Positions 2,606 to 51,482 of a stretch of DNA of 64,000 bases are shown here, piece after piece. The notes under the pieces are model-generated. The model had not been told where the DNA came from. It searched no databases and saw only the letters and a program-made list of their open reading frames with translations. The DNA lies in IMG/VR virus record IMGVR_UViG_3300017528_000567, positions 186,001 through 250,000 of that record, one strand, 5' to 3'. The translations under genes were made by a program, and so were the position numbers. Position 1 is the stretch's first letter. Every line of letters begins with the position of its first letter.

Positions 2606-2814
2606 AAGTGGATTCTGCCGCCTACCGCGATCCCCCGGGTCACCTTGCACTTGCAGCACTGATACAGCCGGTGCCCGGGTTCTTGGCCTGAAAGCTTGAG
2701 CTCGATGGCTACGATCGAGTCGCAATCAGGGTTCTTACAACGTATGTTGATCTTTGGTGCTTCTGCCGGCTCAGAGGTCAAGCCGGGAGCGGTTCCAGTC
2801 TGATCTACTCGCAT
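2602..2814 (-). CDS. Small zinc-ribbon protein
   Basis: CKNPDC...CCKC motifs; packed in the gene run. Confidence 0.6.
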   Translation of the reverse strand: MRVDQTGTAPGLTSEPAEAPKINIRCKNPDCDSIVAIELKLSGQEPGHRLYQCCKCKVTRGIAVGGRIHL

Positions 2815-2817
2815 GTA

Positions 2818-3402
2818 TCAAACCTGAGATGTAGGAAAGTCTTTAGGGAAGAGGTGCTGAAGTATCTCCACGAGGCGATCATAGACATCTGGCATTCCAG
2901 ACTGGTCAGTACGACGCGGAGGGGGATTGATCTCTATTGGGTCCGGCACAGGATTTGACGGCTTGTAAGCCGTGCCCTTAGCCTCGCGCCCCACATTGGT
3001 CATTGGCAGTAGTCGCTGGATCGCGCTGTACTCGTCCCATGTGAAAAAAGACAGGAACGAGGTGAACCCGTCGCCGGGCTTCTCGGGCGGCACCTGCATT
3101 GTCCTGTTGGGCTGAGGGGACGGGATCGGATCCGGCCGAATCGCCGGTGGGGTCACCGGATGAAAATAGCCGGAACCGTAGCGAACAAACGGAAAGATTC
3201 TTCGCCAGTCCTCCCCGCGAATCACGACCGAGTACGCCCCCGGATACCGGAACTCGATATACGGGGTGCTCCCCACTACCCCGGAAAAGACTTTCGCGCG
3301 GCCGAGCAACTTGTCGACCAAGGCCTGAGCCACTCTAGGAGCGTCCGAATAGAGCAAAGGGACAAGACGCTGCCCACTCACGGTCTTAAGCCTGGAGTCC
3401 AC
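2818..3402 (-). CDS. Hypothetical protein
   Basis: 194 aa ORF preceded by TTTATG-N13-GTG motif. Confidence 0.6.
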   Translation of the reverse strand: MDSRLKTVSGQRLVPLLYSDAPRVAQALVDKLLGRAKVFSGVVGSTPYIEFRYPGAYSVVIRGEDWRRIFPFVRYGSGYFHPVTPPAIRPDPIPSPQPNRTMQVPPEKPGDGFTSFLSFFTWDEYSAIQRLLPMTNVGREAKGTAYKPSNPVPDPIEINPPPRRTDQSGMPDVYDRLVEILQHLFPKDFPTSQV

Positions 3403-3425: not shown

Positions 3426-5433
<2,008 letters not shown>

Positions 5434-5463
5434 CCCTCCGGCTACACCAGGAGGTGACCAGCC

Positions 5464-5859
5464 CTACGCGTCGGGCGATAAACCGATCTGCGGGGCAGCG
5501 CTCGCCGCTTGCTGCCGGTTGTGGCGACGCAACGCATATCCCGCTTCCCGGGTGTAAAACAAAAAAAGGTTGCGTGCGTAGTTGGCCGTATTCCGCTGGT
5601 TTCCCGCCGCCTGCGCCTCACGCCACTGCAACCAATACCCATGCGCTTTAAGGGCGAGCTTCCCCACGCGAGGCGGCACGCTGACACCACCTTGGTGTTG
5701 AGTCAGCTGCCATTGCTCGCGCCGAGACCAGGCTGCGATCCTTCTCTGTGCCAGCCGGCGTCTCGACTCGCTGGTTTCAATTGCAGCGCGCCGCTCCGTT
5801 TTTTCGATATACCAGCGGTACATTTGCGCGGCGAGAAAATGATAGCTGAGTGCTTCCAT
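5464..5859 (-). CDS. Hypothetical basic protein
   Basis: 131 aa ORF on the coding strand. Confidence 0.45.
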   Translation of the reverse strand: MEALSYHFLAAQMYRWYIEKTERRAAIETSESRRRLAQRRIAAWSRREQWQLTQHQGGVSVPPRVGKLALKAHGYWLQWREAQAAGNQRNTANYARNLFLFYTREAGYALRRHNRQQAASAAPQIGLSPDA

Positions 5860-7378: not shown

Positions 7379-8959
7379 CTACCAACGCTTTGACTTTTGA
7401 CTGATCTTCCGCTTCTTAGGCTTTTCGGCAGGCAGCTTGTTATCTGCAACCGCGTCCAGTGGCTGGACAACCCATGGCATGGCTCCTGTGGTCAAGGTGC
7501 CAGCCCACGCCGCTGCATCATTCGACCCGCCTGCAATCTGAAAGTCCGCAAGAGCATCGCTGATGCTGAGATGGCCGGTCGGCAAACCTGTATCAGCGAC
7601 ATGGACATCGGGACCTGCGAACGTGGCAGAGACCGTTGCCTGCGATGAGTTCGTCAAGTTGACGCCCAGCGACTGCAGGTCCTGAGCGGCAGACGTCTCA
7701 TAGGTGCCGCTATACCCCCGAGTGCCGCCCCGTGTGACGCTAGCCCGATATGCCTGACTGCCAATATAGCTGTCTCGCGAGCGCAGCTGATCACCGATGT
7801 TCGTAGCCACGTTCCCGAGTCCAACGAGACCACGCGTCGTCACGTCCGTGGAAATAGTATTCATGACGCTCTGCGCACTGATGAAGTCGCCGCGCTTAGC
7901 GTGATCCTCAGCCTCAAGCTGTGCCCGGACCAGTTGAGCCAAGCCTACAACCTGGTCGAGCTCCGGGGTCGGGGTCTCCTGGTGCTCGCCGGCCTTGACG
8001 AACTGCACCTTCGCATTCGTTCCGAGGCTCTTGTGCTCGCGCCGGAGGTTGGCGTCCAAGACGTCGTAGCCGGCCTGGATATTGAACACGTTGACCTCGC
8101 GCGGGAGGGCGGACTTCTGTGCCTGCAACTTCACTGCGAGCACGAAATTCCGCGTCTCACCGGCCAGGATGTCAGACACCTTGAGCTTGACTTGGCCCGT
8201 CTCCTCCTCGTCGGCATCCACGTCCGTGATGACTTGGGTGACCTCATGGCCAGCGAGTGGGCCGATGGCAACCGTCAAATTTGTCGCGTACGTGCTCAGT
8301 AAGCCGCCGAGCTCCTTGCCGAACGCCGTGAGCGCATCGTCCGGATTCTCGACGAATGAATAGTTGCCGTTGCCCGCCTTGGACAGATCCGAAAGAAAGT
8401 CCTGAACCGCATCCTTGCCGTAACCAAAGGCACTGACCGACGCGATCCCGATATTGGGCTTCACCAGGGCAAGGAGCTCCGGCGGGGTCTTGGCCGGACC
8501 TGTGTTGGCCGCCCCATCCGTGAACAAGATGACGCGGGTGATCACCTCACTCGGCAAATCCATGTTGTTCGCGACACGGAAGCCTTCCAGCAAGGCATCG
8601 GCGATGTTCGTGGCGCCACTGAGCGTGAGCCCCTGCACCTTGCGTTTGAGGTCTTCCTTGGCCTCCGGCGTGCACTTCACAGGCTTTGACAACGTCTGCG
8701 CCGAATACGAAAACGCGATCAACCCGCAGTAGTCATTCGCGGAGAGATGATCGATGAGCTTGATCAAAGAGCGCTTCGCATACAGAAGCTTTGCGCCTTC
8801 CATCGAAGGGGATACGTCGATTAGTGGAACGATGCAGAGCGACGGGCGCTTCTCTTCGTTCGTGGTTGCCTCGGGGGCCGAGACGGTGACCACCAAATGG
8901 GCGGCCGTCTCTTGGTCAAAACGGACCTTACCGTATGTGAGTCTAGCTTCTACTTTCAT
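7379..8959 (-). CDS. von Willebrand factor A domain protein
   Basis: MIDAS DVSPSM, GATNI, ILFTDG motifs. Confidence 0.9.
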   Translation of the reverse strand: MKVEARLTYGKVRFDQETAAHLVVTVSAPEATTNEEKRPSLCIVPLIDVSPSMEGAKLLYAKRSLIKLIDHLSANDYCGLIAFSYSAQTLSKPVKCTPEAKEDLKRKVQGLTLSGATNIADALLEGFRVANNMDLPSEVITRVILFTDGAANTGPAKTPPELLALVKPNIGIASVSAFGYGKDAVQDFLSDLSKAGNGNYSFVENPDDALTAFGKELGGLLSTYATNLTVAIGPLAGHEVTQVITDVDADEEETGQVKLKVSDILAGETRNFVLAVKLQAQKSALPREVNVFNIQAGYDVLDANLRREHKSLGTNAKVQFVKAGEHQETPTPELDQVVGLAQLVRAQLEAEDHAKRGDFISAQSVMNTISTDVTTRGLVGLGNVATNIGDQLRSRDSYIGSQAYRASVTRGGTRGYSGTYETSAAQDLQSLGVNLTNSSQATVSATFAGPDVHVADTGLPTGHLSISDALADFQIAGGSNDAAAWAGTLTTGAMPWVVQPLDAVADNKLPAEKPKKRKISQKSKRW

Positions 8960-13327: not shown

Positions 13328-13355
13328 CTCCGGCCCTACACCGAGACGCCAAAAC

Positions 13356-23409: not shown

Positions 23410-24153
23410 AAATTCTGGTACCCGCGGACGGTCTCGCACCGACACTACACCGGGCTTAAGCCGGTTGCCTCTGCTTTGGGCTACGCGGGCATGATAACGA
23501 ACAAATGTGCGCACTCTGTGACAGTTGGAACAGACCAGATCGCACTTCGCAATCTCAGTCTGGATGGCCTCAAGGGACAAGCGACTCGCCATCCTAGAGA
23601 CGTTAAACCTCTTCGCCTCGCCCTCTCGATGATCGAAGTCCATGGCACACGGATGAAATTTTCCCCCACAATCCATGCAGGGTTTCGTGGCTTTGTGCTC
23701 CTGCAGCCACTCCCTATTACGAGCCGCGACCCTAGGGGCGCTACACCGCGCCCGCTGAGCGTACGCTGCCTTGTTGGACTTATAATGCCCGGCTGCGTAG
23801 GTTTTATGACACTGCTTGCATTGCGACTGCCGTACCCCTGACGCCTTTCGCTTGAACCCGAACTGATCTTGGTGCTTGTAAGCGTCACACTTCGCGCAAT
23901 AGAGCAGGGCCTGCCCAGAGGAATCATACGTCCGTTTCCGAGGCACGCCTCCTTTGTGCGCCGCCCCGTAATTAGTGGCCAGCCTTCTGAAGTGAGCAGT
24001 GCTGATCCCCAAAGATTGGATCTTCTGCTTCAGGTGGCTTTGGGTGCCACCTCCTTGCTTTAGCCCCAACGCGCGAAGCACTCCCGCCATTGAAACGTTG
24101 CCGGAGACCGCTCTTTCAAGGGACTGTCTTGAGTGGTGATCCGTCATGACCAC
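23380..24153 (-). CDS. HNH (homing-type) endonuclease; 3' end overlaps tRNAs
   Basis: CAKC, CKQC, CMDCG, MDFDH, EIAKCDLVCSNCHRVRT. Confidence 0.85.
   Translation of the reverse strand: MVMTDHHSRQSLERAVSGNVSMAGVLRALGLKQGGGTQSHLKQKIQSLGISTAHFRRLATNYGAAHKGGVPRKRTYDSSGQALLYCAKCDAYKHQDQFGFKRKASGVRQSQCKQCHKTYAAGHYKSNKAAYAQRARCSAPRVAARNREWLQEHKATKPCMDCGGKFHPCAMDFDHREGEAKRFNVSRMASRLSLEAIQTEIAKCDLVCSNCHRVRTFVRYHARVAQSRGNRLKPGVVSVRDRPRVPEFAYVAPEAER
23417..23490 (-). tRNA. tRNA-Leu(TAA), short variable arm
   Basis: ACCGG-CTTAAGC-CCGGT, CCA. Confidence 0.82.
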
Positions 24154-44837: not shown

Positions 44838-44911
44838 AGTGCCGCACCAGGGAGTCGAACCCTGTGGAGCCATCTTAAGAGGATGGTGCTCGACCGTTGA
44901 GCGTGCGCGGC
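44838..44911 (-). tRNA. tRNA-Lys(CTT)
   Basis: Loop CTCTTAA. Confidence 0.88.
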
Positions 44912-44913
44912 GT

Positions 44914-44988
44914 TGTAGGGTCGGAGGGGATCGAACCCTCGATCGTCCGATTAAAAGTCGGCTGCTTTGTCCACTTAGCTACGACCCC
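44914..44988 (-). tRNA. tRNA-Lys(TTT)
   Basis: Loop CTTTTAA. Confidence 0.9.
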
Positions 44989-45046: not shown

Positions 45047-45130
45047 TAGTGGTGGGGGGCGGAATTTGCACCGCCACAGGATTAACGGCTGATTTACAGT
45101 CAGTTGGGCTCACTCGTGCCCAGCCCCACC
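45047..45130 (-). tRNA. tRNA-Tyr(GTA)
   Basis: Loop CTGTAAA, long variable arm. Confidence 0.85.
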
Positions 45131-45202
45131 AGAATCATCTGGGTAGCGGCTGAGCGTCGATAGCGTTCGTGTAGCGGTTCGTGTCGCATGGTCTGAGCTC
45201 TA

Positions 45203-45240
45203 GAAACGAAAAGAGCCGCCTGGTTTCCCGGGCGGCTCTC
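45203..45240 (-). terminator. Attenuator terminator upstream of the tRNA array
   Basis: GAGAGCCGCC-CGGGAAACCA-GGCGGCTCTT then TTCGTTTCT. Confidence 0.8.
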
Positions 45241-45266
45241 GATTCAATCCTACTTTCGTGGATTGG

Positions 45267-45461
45267 TTAGTCGAGTGCCGCCCTATGATCTGCCTCGGGT
45301 CGCGGATTGCGGGTGCTAAACACCGAGGCTTGGTGGGACGTAATGTTCTTACCGCCGAGATAGCTCGCCGACAGACCTTCAGAGCCCAAGCTCAGGACGC
45401 ACCACATCCCCGCGGTTTTCACCGACTGGGATAAGGGTCTTGATGTGAGCTGAGTCGTCAT
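45267..45461 (-). CDS. 64-aa attenuator leader peptide
   Basis: Last codons (GGGCGGCACTCGA) complementary to the terminator 5' arm; upstream GGTGTA at 45524-45529. Confidence 0.7.
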   Translation of the reverse strand: MTTQLTSRPLSQSVKTAGMWCVLSLGSEGLSASYLGGKNITSHQASVFSTRNPRPEADHRAALD

Positions 45462-45659
45462 GTCCGTGTTCTCTTGAACCAAGGGCGGGCGCCTAGCCCA
45501 CCAGCTACTGGTTCGTGGGTTGTTACACCTGCGAGCCTAGCACGCAAGCGGTTTCATAAAGAAAAGTGCAAAGGTTTCTTGAGAAAGTTGCAAGTTGTTG
45601 AAAGGACGGCTGGAATCACGGGCCAAGGGTAAAGATGAAGGGGTGTAGGCTCCGAGCTC

Positions 45660-46751
45660 CTACCGAAACTGCGTGGGAGGCGGTTTGATCGCCTGGCCCT
45701 CTTCGGGCAACGGCTGCGGCTTCCATTCTGCGATGAGCTTGCGGAGTACCTGCAGATCTTTCACAAGCCGCTGTAGGATGTGCTTCGTGTCGTCAATCCG
45801 GCCCTTGAGTAAGCGGTCCCAAGCCGGCTCTCCTGGCTTGACCATTTTTACATTGCCGGACAACTCATAGGCCAGCTGGTCGACCTCTCCATTCTCGAGG
45901 CGTCGAAGGAAGTCCTTGTGGTGAGCTTCACTCTTGTCGAGCACGCCCACTAGATGCTCAGTGCCTTCACATGAGAGCTCGAAAGGCTGGTAGCCAACCC
46001 CGTAGCAACTACCCTGAATCTGCCCCCAACCGGGCCGCTGGTAGCCGTGGAGCACGACAGTGGGCGGCGCACTACTGCGGGCCTTCAGCTTGATGTTGCG
46101 AAAACAGCACGAGCACGTCCCGCTGGCGCTACGCGTCTTGGGCTTCTTCTTCTCTCGCTCGGCCTCGTGCGTTTCCAAGCCAAGGTAGTTAGAGGCCTGC
46201 TCTTTCAGCTTGGTCTTCTTGTCGAGCCAAGCGGCGAGTGCGTAAGGCGTCATCTTTTTGTAGTCGCCGCGCTCCACCTGATTTAGATCGGCGCCCAGCT
46301 CGAAGACTTGTCCCTCCGGTGACGTAATAAGGAACCCGTCGGTCCCGACGAACTCGTGATAGGTGACATACCAAGATCCCGGCTGTCCCTCCTTCACATC
46401 CGAGAGGTCCATCACGTACTTTTGCCCGAACTTCGGAGCAGAGGGCTTGCTCGAAACCTCGAGGCGCTTCAGCTGCGTGTGCCGCGCCTGAATCTGCTCA
46501 AGGCCATACTCGAAGTGGTGTTGGGGCCGGTTATCCGCCGTCTCATAGCCCCGGGTGGTAACGAAGGCGACGGTCTTTTCCACCTTCCAGCCCCCGCCCA
46601 ACCGAGCCAGCACCTCCAACCACTGCTTGATCGTCAAGCTCGTGGTCGCGCCCTTGCGTATCTTGATGAGCAGCTCCCGGAACTTCTCTTCGGACATTGC
46701 CGCTGCGGCATAGCGCCGCGCAACACGATTTGCAATTCGCTCTCTAATCAT
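45660..46751 (-). CDS. Hypothetical protein (RVARRYAAA N-terminus)
   Basis: 363 aa; CSCC..HGY..C cluster. Confidence 0.75.
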   Translation of the reverse strand: MIRERIANRVARRYAAAAMSEEKFRELLIKIRKGATTSLTIKQWLEVLARLGGGWKVEKTVAFVTTRGYETADNRPQHHFEYGLEQIQARHTQLKRLEVSSKPSAPKFGQKYVMDLSDVKEGQPGSWYVTYHEFVGTDGFLITSPEGQVFELGADLNQVERGDYKKMTPYALAAWLDKKTKLKEQASNYLGLETHEAEREKKKPKTRSASGTCSCCFRNIKLKARSSAPPTVVLHGYQRPGWGQIQGSCYGVGYQPFELSCEGTEHLVGVLDKSEAHHKDFLRRLENGEVDQLAYELSGNVKMVKPGEPAWDRLLKGRIDDTKHILQRLVKDLQVLRKLIAEWKPQPLPEEGQAIKPPPTQFR

Positions 46752-48373: not shown

Positions 48374-48552
48374 TGCAGCAGCATCGCCAGCGCCACTCCA
48401 GCACCAAAGGACAGCGCGAGCATGAATAGCAATATCGGCAGGGCGATCCAATCAGCACGAGGCGTGCGGACCAAAGGACCCTTGGTCTCTACAGGTTCAA
48501 TCTCTGGGTCCATGCCGGTACCATTGCCATCGTAAGAAAAGGTCGAGATCAT
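48367..48552 (-). CDS. Small membrane protein
   Basis: Hydrophobic C-terminal helix. Confidence 0.45.
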   Translation of the reverse strand: MISTFSYDGNGTGMDPEIEPVETKGPLVRTPRADWIALPILLFMLALSFGAGVALAMLLHH

Positions 48553-49225
48553 CGTCCGACACAGCTTCTTCTTTTGAAGGGACCGCCTCGCTTACAGCTG
48601 GAGGTGCCTCCGATCCCCACGTGTCCCAGCCGGGCCACGCCTCCCTCGCGAAGAGCTCGATGCGGGGCCTGTCGCCCAGGAGCTCGACGATCAAGTCGCG
48701 GAAGATGGCGGGCTTGCGCGAGTGCACCTGCTGCTTGGGCGCCAGCACGTAATCGACCGGCCACTCTGGCGGCAGCACCTCATAACCATCGTGGTCGAGC
48801 TCAAACACATGCTGGACCTGGCTCTCACTGAGCAGCGGGAACACACGCTCATTCGGATGCGTCGAGAAGACCAGCAGCAGCTCATCGAGCGGCTTTACGA
48901 ATCGGGGCCGTGGGCCGCTTGCCCTGATGGGCGTGCCGTCCTTCGTGGTCTTCACCCAGATGTACGCGATGCCCTGGTAGTGCAGACCGTGCCGCTCACG
49001 CCATTGCTCGCCGCAACGCATCGCAAGGGCGAGCTTTGGACCCGTGACCCACGAAAAGACAGCGCAGCGTTTGGCCATGAACCGAGACCAATCGAACGCT
49101 GCGATCTCGAGCTCCGGCATTTGCTCGTACGTGAGCTTGGCAGTGCCGAATGACGTGTACGGCCACGGGAAGTCCGCGTAGATGATCTCGTACGGGCCGC
49201 TCTTTTCTGCGGCTGCGGCTGACAT
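48497..49225 (-). CDS. MT-A70-family adenine methyltransferase
   Basis: IIYADFPWPY, IWVK, HSRKP, RIELFAR, GWDTWG; GGTGTA-N9-ATG. Confidence 0.9.
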   Translation of the reverse strand: MSAAAAEKSGPYEIIYADFPWPYTSFGTAKLTYEQMPELEIAAFDWSRFMAKRCAVFSWVTGPKLALAMRCGEQWRERHGLHYQGIAYIWVKTTKDGTPIRASGPRPRFVKPLDELLLVFSTHPNERVFPLLSESQVQHVFELDHDGYEVLPPEWPVDYVLAPKQQVHSRKPAIFRDLIVELLGDRPRIELFAREAWPGWDTWGSEAPPAVSEAVPSKEEAVSDDDLDLFLRWQWYRHGPRD

Positions 49226-49295
49226 GTCATCGGCTACACCAAGGGGTTGGCGCGCCGTTCGACGGAACCACCCATTTGTGCTATCCTTACCTGTA

Positions 49296-49871
49296 ATGGC
49301 TAGCGCACTCCCAACCCCCAAGCTGACTCCGGCAGAGTTCATCGAATGGGAGAAGACGCAGCTAGACAGGCATGAGTTTGTTGGCGGTGAAGTCTTCGCA
49401 ATGGCCGGTGCTTCCCCGCGCCACAACAAACTCGCCTCTAACCTGCACTCTGTTCTAGGGCGTCTTCTCCGGGGCACGCCGTGCGATGCGTTAGAATCGA
49501 ATCAACGGGTCTGCGTAGAGACTGAGTCAGGTTACGTCTACCCAGACATGAGCATCGTGTGCGGAGAGCCTAATTTTGACGAGGTCGGCCAGGCCCTCTT
49601 GAACCCGACGGTGCTTGTGGAAATCCTGTCCAAGGGCACCGAGGCTTTTGACCGAGGCGACAAGTTCCGCCTCTACCGGGCTCGCCCGTCCCTTCTTGAC
49701 TACCTTCTGGTGTCGCAGCGTGCGGCGCTGATCGAGCATTTTCAGCGCCGCGATTCCACCTGGGTGCTTGTTGAAGCTGGCGCTGAAGCCAAGGTTACTC
49801 TGGCAAACGGGACCAGTTTCTCAGTCGACGAAGTCTATGAAGGCGCGTGGCGCTTCCCGGGCGACGACTGA
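49296..49871 (+). CDS. Uma2-family endonuclease
   Basis: HEFVGGEVFAMAG, YPDMSIVC, VEILSKGT, DRGDKF. Confidence 0.9.
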   Translation: MASALPTPKLTPAEFIEWEKTQLDRHEFVGGEVFAMAGASPRHNKLASNLHSVLGRLLRGTPCDALESNQRVCVETESGYVYPDMSIVCGEPNFDEVGQALLNPTVLVEILSKGTEAFDRGDKFRLYRARPSLLDYLLVSQRAALIEHFQRRDSTWVLVEAGAEAKVTLANGTSFSVDEVYEGAWRFPGDD

Positions 49872-49883
49872 AAAGGAGCCGGG

Positions 49884-51482
49884 TCATAGCCCCGCGAGCT
49901 CCTCAAAGAGGTCGGGCTCACGAGTCGTGCGAAGCACCGCAACCTGATGCGACTCCGGGTCGCGCTCGATGCCAATGAACCGGCAGCCCTCCTCGAGCGC
50001 CGCCAAGCATGTGGTGCCGCTTCCGCAATACGGGTCCAGGACCGTGCCGCCCTTGGGCGTGACGAGCCTGACCAGCCAACGCATCACAGCGAGCGGCTTC
50101 ACCGTCGGGTGCTTGTTGGTCCCCTTCGGCAGCCCGCGATCGCGCTCGGCCTTGCTGACCTTGGCTGAATAGAAGAACGGGGCGTCGGGCTCGAACTGTC
50201 CGAAGAAGCGAGAGGCACCTCCGGTATCGCCGAAGCCACCCGCAGTTGCCACGGGATTCGAACCACTGAAGCCGCCTTCATATGAGACAGCTCCAGCGAA
50301 TTTACCTCCGCTCTTCCCACCCAGCGATGTCGACACCCCACTCTGCTCATCCAGGGTCTTTACGGGGCAACCGTCAGCGCATTCGTAGACAGGTACTTCA
50401 GCGGCGTCGGTTTCAAACTGGCTGAAGAAGCGGGAGGCCCCTCCAGCATCCGAGTAGCCTTGCGACGTCCGCGCGTATTCTCGGCCCTTGGCTACGTTTG
50501 TCTCGCACGCCGAGTTGTTTCGAATCCCCGGAGCCCCACCCGCCGGCCCACTCTGCGCATCCAGAGTCTTGACCGGACACCCGACTTCGCATTCATAGAC
50601 AGGCACCTCCTCCATGCCGTCCGCGTCGCCCGTCTGCTCCGACGTGTAGGCGTGGCCGGCACCCTCACCGAAGGGCTTCATCCCGTCGTCGAAACGGTTG
50701 ATGACGGGCGCTGGCAAACGCTTGGTCCCGGTGATTTTGCAATCGGCTGCGTGAGTAAGCAGGAGGTTGGCGGGCCATCGACCGTGATTGTGAACCACGG
50801 TTTCAGTCCCTTGAGTCATGCCGCCAGTCTGCTTCGACCCCGGCCCACTAGTGCGCTCCGCTCTAGGTTTTGAGCTATTGGTGCGGGTCTGGACACCAAC
50901 GCGACAAGCATCGATGTTCATCGCCCCAGTGTCAGTCGCGAGCACTTGCTTGGCGACCGTCGACTCAGCGAGCGGCTTACGAAAAATCAGCGCCGGCTCC
51001 CAACTAGGCTTGAGCGCCGTGGCCCAGCCCTCCCAAGAGGAAGCTTCCTCAGCACTGAGCCCAGCCTTCTCAAGTGCTTTTTGAACAGATAGCGCTTTGG
51101 GAAAACCAGACCCGTTCAACCACTGAAAACACTGGACCCCGAACTGACTCGCGATCGTGTCGCGACACTCGAAACCCGCAGCGCGGATCCCGATCGAGAT
51201 CAGATCGAAAGTACGCGTTCCGCCGAATGAGACCAGGTGCCCACCAGGCTTCAGAACACGGAGGCACTCACGCCAAACCGAGATCGGCGGGATGCTCCAA
51301 TCACGACCCATGAAGTCGCCCGACGTATCGAGCTCCCCGCCCTGCAGGTACGCGATGATCTCGTCCGCGGTCGGCTCTCTCGTGCCTAGCCCATAGGGCG
51401 GGTCGGTCACGACCGAGTGCACCGACTCATCCGGCAACGTCTTAAGAACGTCCAGGCAGTCGCCAAGCAGGATCTGGTTCAC
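49884..51482 (-). CDS. DNA N4/N6 methyltransferase (beta class)
   Basis: VTDPPY, HPTVKP, VLDPYCGSGTT. Confidence 0.92.
   Translation of the reverse strand: MNQILLGDCLDVLKTLPDESVHSVVTDPPYGLGTREPTADEIIAYLQGGELDTSGDFMGRDWSIPPISVWRECLRVLKPGGHLVSFGGTRTFDLISIGIRAAGFECRDTIASQFGVQCFQWLNGSGFPKALSVQKALEKAGLSAEEASSWEGWATALKPSWEPALIFRKPLAESTVAKQVLATDTGAMNIDACRVGVQTRTNSSKPRAERTSGPGSKQTGGMTQGTETVVHNHGRWPANLLLTHAADCKITGTKRLPAPVINRFDDGMKPFGEGAGHAYTSEQTGDADGMEEVPVYECEVGCPVKTLDAQSGPAGGAPGIRNNSACETNVAKGREYARTSQGYSDAGGASRFFSQFETDAAEVPVYECADGCPVKTLDEQSGVSTSLGGKSGGKFAGAVSYEGGFSGSNPVATAGGFGDTGGASRFFGQFEPDAPFFYSAKVSKAERDRGLPKGTNKHPTVKPLAVMRWLVRLVTPKGGTVLDPYCGSGTTCLAALEEGCRFIGIERDPESHQVAVLRTTREPDLFEELAGL

Follow-up and report, generated by a model that had tools for sequence, protein, structure and literature searches.

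Transcription attenuators of the trp, his, leu, thr, ilv, and phe operons of Proteobacteria consist of a translated leader ORF followed by an intrinsic terminator, and their antiterminator shares a strand with this terminator. The stop codon is placed so that the terminating ribosome covers the 5' strand of the antiterminator, while the sequence of the peptide is largely unconstrained. The leader ORFs of these amino-acid operons are 14–32 codons long (trpL 14, hisL 16, ilvL 32), carry a codon run for a single amino acid, and precede genes of biosynthetic enzymes. The leader of E. coli pyrBI is longer (pyrL, 44 codons), and its outcome depends on how closely the ribosome trails the polymerase and not on one starved codon; a close ribosome suppresses the terminator directly, so that tight coupling means readthrough. 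T-box riboswitches tie the antiterminator/terminator choice to tRNA economy as well, but they are untranslated, located before aminoacyl-tRNA synthetase or amino-acid genes, and found mainly in Firmicutes.

The tRNA arrays that phages carry protect them against tRNA-cleaving immunity and, more generally, against the loss of host tRNAs; the control of their expression has hardly been described. Described pairs of a phage tRNA and a tRNA-cleaving defence are T5 tRNA-Tyr and retron-Eco7, T1/T7 tRNA-Lys and PrrC, and T5 tRNA-Lys and PARIS (PMC11555353; PMC11464382). High expression in T5 is reported to come from a strong promoter (PMC11555353). A search of the literature returned no leader-peptide attenuator for tRNA genes and no translation-sensing control of phage tRNA arrays, an absence that is not proof of novelty.

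The stretch analysed here (64,000 nt, further called the window) is part of IMG/VR UViG 3300017528_000567, a large metagenomic contig of a soil jumbo phage, 255 kb long. The window has G+C content of 58.6%, the minus strand carries nearly all genes, and 38 tRNA genes were predicted by ARAGORN with default settings, all on the minus strand. A module located entirely on this strand, between 45203 and 45593, may be a ribosome-coupled transcription attenuator heading the first tRNA operon of the phage, a reading to which we give about even confidence. As in the attenuators of amino-acid operons, an apparently translated ORF is followed by an intrinsic terminator, the potential antiterminator shares a strand with it, the stop codon is placed at the end of the antiterminator 5' strand, and the peptide is largely unconstrained. 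Unlike there, phage tRNA genes are located downstream, the ORF is much longer, there is no codon run for a single amino acid but nearly all amino acids and 39–46 different codons, the 1:2 pause or anti-antiterminator helix is a candidate only, and no Rfam leader family matches. With pyrBI, the module shares the long leader ORF and an outcome that would be set by the distance between ribosome and polymerase; its geometry, however, predicts the opposite sign, acting through an antiterminator. The choice between the two hairpins may be tied to tRNA economy as in T-boxes, but neither T-box sequence, nor Stem I architecture, nor an Rfam match is present. The first genes behind the leader encode tRNA-Tyr and tRNA-Lys, the species shown to rescue phages in counter-defence arrays. 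Judged from sequence, a ribosome-read switch before phage tRNA genes looks like a combination not described before; if the reading is correct, it is the first attenuator found before tRNA genes.

Relatives of the Module

Thirteen DNA copies of the module were gathered from metagenomic phage contigs by gene context, a DNA-pattern scan, and protein look-ups. They comprise the window, its 99% relative L001, and, at about 82% to <68% DNA identity, L008, L009, L014, L023, L003, and L025–L030. Four more members are known as peptides only. Copies L008 and L009 were found via the neighbouring gene, and L014 and L023 via the DNA pattern; the ORF was not used to find these four, so they carry no bias in favour of an intact ORF. 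The 13 DNA copies and the four peptide-only members have the same order of parts, and the module stands always directly before tRNA-Tyr and then tRNA-Lys, even where the upstream genes differ or are reversed. A profile search recognized the element exactly once at each locus, and likewise just once in the 64-kb window.

Relatives of the neighbouring 363-aa protein and of the small ORF come from soil, rhizosphere, and freshwater metagenomes. No matches to the region were found in phage GenBank by megablast, and the neighbouring gene has there distant protein matches to jumbo phages only. When three conserved DNA patterns were compared with IMG/VR, only the contig of the window itself and one 99% relative were recognized. 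The DNA-pattern scan of metagenomes returned 13 loci, of which three have the element (two of them new copies) and ten are chance matches. The element was not found in RNA runs; from one run of unknown kind, a single contig of 222 nt was obtained, which begins within the promoter region and is probably DNA, hence uninformative. Rfam scans of the window and seven relatives, with E up to 5, revealed only tRNAs and chance matches on the terminator hairpin. T-box, amino-acid leaders, tmRNA, RNase P, and 6S RNA were ruled out by these permissive scans, which gave no match to any such family.

Leader ORF

The leader ORF (45267..45461) starts with ATG at 45461 and ends with TAA at 45269–45267. The original prediction had counted 64 codons of 45 different kinds that cover all 20 amino acids. 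A recount on the minus strand, with 64 sense codons, agrees exactly; the codons listed there (TTA, AGA, AGG, CGA, ACA, and TCA) are each present once. The ORF is preceded by a 5' untranslated region of 62 nt (45462..45523) with a small hairpin GGGC...GCCC at 45499–45487, in place of which the relatives hold a hairpin with differing sequences. A purine-rich, weak Shine-Dalgarno-like stretch AAGAGAA lies 9–15 nt before the ATG and is conserved in relatives; the ribosome-binding site of the ORF is thus weak.

The reading frame is open in all 13 copies, with no stop in frame 0, while the other five frames contain 0–6 stops each, about three per copy. Spacings between conserved anchors vary by 3, 6, 9, or 12 nt, and their remainder modulo 3 is constant despite at least nine indel events. 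The ATG is invariant, and the ORF is 63–70 codons long across the family. The last 13 nt before the final base and stop codon (45271..45283, GGGCGGCACTCGA) are further called region 2. In L003, a deletion of 1 nt alters the last six amino acids, yet region 2 is preserved in its bases, and the adjoining stop stays in place.

Protein constraint is weak in comparison. Over all pairs of copies, differences at the three codon positions of the ORF number 1170, 1182, and 1304, with dN/dS of about 0.6 in variable and conserved columns alike; the adjacent 363-aa gene, compared for the same genome pairs, has 25, 21, and 95 differences and dN/dS of 0.13. AlphaFold (AF2, 16 sequences) predicted no secondary structure for the peptide (pLDDT 57, pTM 0.12). 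No match to Pfam was found, nor to PHROGs for 16 members, and recognition in the ESM Atlas was low, with the best score of 0.65. With its frame kept, its substitutions even, and neither fold nor family recognized, the ORF does not look like a normal protein gene. The pattern suggests that selection acts on the reading frame and hardly on the peptide, as would be expected of a leader ORF, and the ORF is probably translated.

About 20 residues are nevertheless conserved in the peptide (WC.LS., YL, QAS.F, and RNPR.PEA). Several nucleotide blocks in the ORF are identical including third codon positions, and one identical block of 40 nt is common to copies with flanking proteins only about 45% identical. 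These long blocks and conserved residues are beyond what an attenuator explains; part of them is RNA structure.

Codon Diversity

The original prediction described the leader as pan-codon, responding to a stall at any starved or cleaved-tRNA codon. As background, 12,096 overlapping 64-codon windows were taken from 40 long minus-strand ORFs, which were regarded as the coding sequences of the window. Forty-five distinct codons are reached by 0.2% of these windows (mean 35.0, sd 3.0), all 20 amino acids are present in 5%, and both together in none, but this background is too easy to exceed because real genes are biased in codon usage and composition. Stop-free shuffles of the ORF's own bases have on average 39.4 distinct codons (sd 2.4), and 45 are reached by 1.5–1.8% of them. 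The ORFs of the relatives contain 39–46 distinct codons, corresponding to z of −0.2 to +2.7 against composition-matched random ORFs. The mean z is +1.1, so family diversity is only slightly above random and a pan-codon design is not supported. All 20 amino acids are present in 12 of 13 DNA copies and, by reading, in the four peptide-only members, but these copies are not independent because most residues sit in conserved columns inherited from one ancestor.

The codon adaptation of the leader is low, at the 8.5th percentile of the CDS windows, and the high diversity mostly represents absent codon bias. No codon run for a single amino acid was found in the leader ORF, and no enrichment for codons of the directly downstream tRNAs (19–30% vs. 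27% background). A coupled loss and gain of Trp in L030, where the conserved Trp is gone and another appears elsewhere, was given no weight, as the chance expectation is high.

Terminator, Antiterminator, and Other RNA Structures

The predicted intrinsic terminator ahead of the first tRNA was recognized at 45239–45203 (45203..45239) as a hairpin and U-tract of about −24 kcal/mol. Its stem is formed by AGAGCCGCCCGG and CCAGGCGGCTCT, closed by a GAAA loop and followed by TTTCGTTTC; after stem and loop comes UUUCGUUUC. An internal mismatch hid the terminator from a simple scan. The GAAA loop is conserved in all copies, and the stem has compensatory changes across them (AU/GC, CG/AU, and CG/GC). 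In L001, a 6-nt insertion and several substitutions are located right after the U-tract (about 7550–7560, corresponding to 45195–45203 of the window).

A complementarity of 12 of 13 nt between the ORF end and the terminator had also been predicted, and it is present: the reverse complement of GGGCGGCACTCGA (45283–45271) is, save one position, TCGAGAGCCGCCC (45242–45230). The latter, further called region 3 (45230..45242), covers the 5' arm of the terminator and would be at the same time the 3' arm of an antiterminator, with region 2 as its 5' arm. Pairing of the ORF end with the terminator arm has −24.9 kcal/mol, while the best of 6000 random 17-mers of the window reached −23.0, and in all 13 copies no other segment of the leader pairs with the terminator 5' arm as well as the ORF end does. 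When the nascent RNA of each copy was folded, beginning 25 nt ahead of the stop and ending with the terminator loop, the same antiterminator was obtained in 13/13 copies: the last 12–13 nt of the ORF pair with the terminator 5' arm around a nested small hairpin between stop and terminator (45245..45265), which is itself present in all 13 folds. Three versions of the stem of the nested hairpin were identified (AAUCC/GGAUU, AUCCC/GGGAU, and ACCUG/CAGGU). Predicted energies are −24 to −34 kcal/mol for the antiterminator and −23 to −27 kcal/mol for the terminator. The two structures are mutually exclusive, as they share region 3.

The pairing, conservation of which in relatives had been named as decisive in the original prediction, is held in 13/13 copies as pairing potential. 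Region 2 is nearly invariant, and no compensatory changes between regions 2 and 3 were seen among the 13 copies. Variation in region 3 is always compensated in the terminator 3' arm; opposite region 2, two lineages have wobble pairs as a result, and in two others a mismatch close to the end of the helix is left uncompensated. The antiterminator thus appears conserved as pairing potential, with covariation not proving it. In region 2, L001 has a single change from C to U, by which a G-C pair becomes G-U and Ala becomes Val.

The stop codon lies 1 nt past region 2 in 12 of 13 copies and 2 nt past it in L003, and the terminator stem starts 20–27 nt past the stop codon. In E. coli, a terminating ribosome no longer blocks the terminator hairpin at distances beyond 27–30 nt (PMC4824070). 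As the spacing is near this limit, a ribosome at the stop codon would cover region 2 and leave the terminator free. In equilibrium folding with simulated ribosome masks, the terminator state was favoured in 11 of 12 copies whichever segment was masked, with no shift between states; any switch must therefore be kinetic, as in classical attenuators.

Candidate region 1 (GGUGCGUC, 45396..45403) is able to pair with region 2. In RNAalifold analysis of the 13 copies, GGUGCGYC (codons 20–22) and GGCGGCAC form canonical pairs in 98% of cells with wobble variation only, and the pairing energy of −12 to −18 kcal/mol is ordinary. Two further structures lie within the ORF. Hairpin H2 (CGGU-GAAA-ACCG, 45413..45424) has compensatory changes in L028 (UA to CG) and L030 (GC to CG and UA to AU), and its loop remains GNRA while the encoded amino acids change. 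A conserved RNA domain (45292..45329) consists of helix GCCUCGG/CCGAGGC around two small hairpins; one compensatory change (GC to AU) is present in two copies, and third codon positions are invariant there. A helix between the start region and the CUGAGCUUG block, suggested on seven sequences, was gone when 13 were compared and has broken pairs; it was rejected.

Proposed Mechanism and Alternative Explanations

Read as a ribosome-coupled attenuator, the module would work as follows. Transcription from the promoter-like motif would start a leader RNA of about 310 nt that carries the translated ORF of 63–70 codons. Region 2 can pair with region 3 and, with the nested hairpin, would form an antiterminator whose stability about equals or exceeds that of the terminator. 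A lead ribosome keeping pace with RNA polymerase would cover region 2 when it reaches the stop codon, so the terminator would form and transcription would end before tRNA-Tyr. With a ribosome that lags, or that stalls at any point upstream, region 2 would be free as region 3 emerges, the antiterminator would form first, and readthrough into the genes for tRNA-Tyr, Lys, Lys, Asp, Ala, Ala, and Arg would follow. We infer that translation decides termination, and infer also the direction of the response and any tie to tRNA shortage; the anatomy, its conservation, the constraint on the frame, and the weak constraint on the protein are read directly from the copies. The predicted leader-peptide attenuator is supported in part: the anatomy, open frame, stop placement, and pairing are kept in 13 copies and fit the logic proposed for it, but the pan-codon design and the gating of the whole array find no support. 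Speaking against an attenuator are the missing regulatory codon run, the missing enrichment for codons of the downstream tRNAs, the weak ribosome-binding site, the nearly invariant region 2 that does not co-vary with region 3, and the ORF that is two to four times longer than classical leaders; furthermore, the conserved block past the terminator could be an independent tRNA promoter.

The leader could also be a general sensor of translation capacity, in which slow decoding of any codon would raise the output of phage tRNA-Tyr, Lys, Asp, Ala, and Arg. We regard this as speculative and rather unlikely. Some 40 codons of nearly every kind lie between the ORF start and region 2, and slow decoding, whether from host tRNA depletion, anticodon-nuclease cleavage, or starvation, would delay the ribosome and thereby lead to the antiterminator. 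The idea of a sensor of tRNA damage would fit recent findings on phage tRNA-Tyr and tRNA-Lys that defeat tRNA-cleaving defences (PMC11555353; PMC11464382). If true, it would be a feedback loop dosing counter-defence tRNAs by need and the first leader reporting on translation in general, not on one amino acid.

The module may instead be a self-contained small gene or dual-function RNA, with a short stable transcript and a product (peptide, structured RNA, or both) that acts in trans; we consider this possible, if doubtful. Pairing of the ORF end with the terminator would then only shape or stabilise the 3' end, and the tRNAs would be constitutive via leak-through or via the downstream block. 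Such a gene would be expected to have its own promoter-like motif and an efficient-looking terminator, as the module has, and in Sinorhizobium, both the leader peptides and the terminated RNAs of attenuators are reported to be capable of acting in trans (PMC7298713). The approximately 20 conserved residues and dN/dS below 1 are consistent with a functional peptide, but substitutions are even over codon positions and no fold or family was predicted. Likewise, hairpins with compensatory changes inside the ORF and the conserved 45-nt block past the terminator would suit a functional RNA, but the nucleotides of the ORF end and the stop position survive the frameshift in L003, and the module is invariably attached to the first tRNA cluster. 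A dedicated terminator would moreover be counteracted by an antiterminator of equal stability, which is conserved in 13/13 copies.

A factor-sensing RNA switch, whose structured core would bind a protein, tRNA, or small molecule and thereby select one of the same two structures, antiterminator or terminator, with translation secondary, appears improbable. It would account for the perfectly identical nucleotide blocks including third codon positions, for the GNRA hairpin with compensatory changes and the enclosed helix domain, and for the GAAA loop of the terminator conserved in all copies. No Rfam family, T-box and amino-acid leaders included, was however recognized in the window and seven relatives with E up to 5, and a frame, start codon, and stop position kept through nine or more indels would be left unexplained. 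An ordinary gene end, with a spurious or minor ORF, a normal terminator, and coincidental complementarity and codon diversity, is highly improbable: GC-rich terminator arms readily find GGCGGC-like partners and the codon diversity of the relatives is near that of random sequence, but the pairing energy is beyond all 6000 random 17-mers, the partner is the best one in 13/13 copies, and the whole arrangement is conserved at 68–82% DNA identity and beyond.

The ribosome-coupled attenuator would be compact, with a length of about 330 nt, and amenable to testing. When evidence of frame, substitutions, and RNA fold is combined, an open frame that is conserved while its peptide is unconstrained can be recognized in metagenomes.

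Downstream tRNA Genes

The first gene past the terminator is tRNA-Tyr(GTA) at 45049..45130 (−), which starts 73 nt past the terminator end. It has a 3-bp D stem and an unusual T loop; it was missed by default ARAGORN and Rfam, found by relaxed ARAGORN, and called outright in L008. In relatives, tRNA-Tyr follows the module too. The second gene of the cluster, tRNA-Lys(UUU) at 44915..44988 (−), is present in every relative. Behind the leader, the cluster encodes, in order, tRNA-Tyr, Lys, Lys, Asp, Ala, Ala, and Arg. A tRNA-Lys(CUU) is probable at about 44840–44913 (−), beside tRNA-Lys(UUU); it was called in relatives and not in the window. With the additional tRNA-Tyr and the probable tRNA-Lys(CUU), the array has at least 39–40 tRNAs. 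In L025, a ParE/ParD toxin–antitoxin pair is encoded after the first tRNA cluster (2690–3195). In L003, adjacent tRNAs at 5387–5460 and 5462–5536 (the same in L004) have four-base anticodons cgca and ctga according to ARAGORN, but Rfam rates both as ordinary tRNAs. Either the calls are wrong, or the two may be tRNAs similar to frameshift suppressors.

Between terminator and tRNA-Tyr, a block of about 45 nt (45150..45190, −) is conserved in all copies reaching it. Two occurrences of ACACGAAC, spaced 12 nt apart, lie within it, as does a GCUAUC motif present also inside the ORF. The block may serve as a pre-tRNA leader, as a binding site, or as a second promoter. Gating of the whole tRNA array, as originally predicted, is not favoured by this arrangement, in which only the first cluster is directly downstream and the block after the terminator could be a second promoter.

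Promoter-like Motif

The GGTGTA motif (45529–45524) had been noted ahead of the ORF. It is located 63 nt upstream of the ATG, hence it is not the ribosome-binding site of the ORF. It represents the second half of a conserved promoter-like bipartite motif TTGC(G/A)N-N12-GGTGTA, in the window CTTGCGT-12 nt-GGTGTA (45524..45548, −). Among the copies other than L023 and L028, both halves and their spacing are kept in most and degenerate in a few (GGTGGC in L025). The upstream genes of L003 and L004 face the opposite way, so a promoter must lie at the module there, and the bipartite motif is probably this promoter. A conserved upstream box TTGCAACTTTC (45583..45593, −) occurs once in the window and is kept in nearly all relatives.

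Further upstream, the stretch 45625–45661 (−) is possibly the own terminator of its gene; in that case, the leader would be transcribed as a unit of its own. DNA methyltransferases of the MT-A70 and N6_N4_Mtase families are encoded by two genes just upstream of the module at 48497–51482 (−) and were found again in relatives L007 and L008. The whole window has 34 copies of GGTGTA, and 30 of these lie on the minus strand, which is the coding one, e.g., at 13342, 20362, 26064, 51497, and 62111 (−). Many copies precede a start codon by exactly 9 nt, follow immediately upon the 3' end of a tRNA, or occupy the loop of a hairpin (e.g., gggcgc-GGTGTA-gcgccc at 23747). The motif could act as a phage promoter or −10-like element from which transcripts with a short 5' leader or none would start, or else as an RNA signal.
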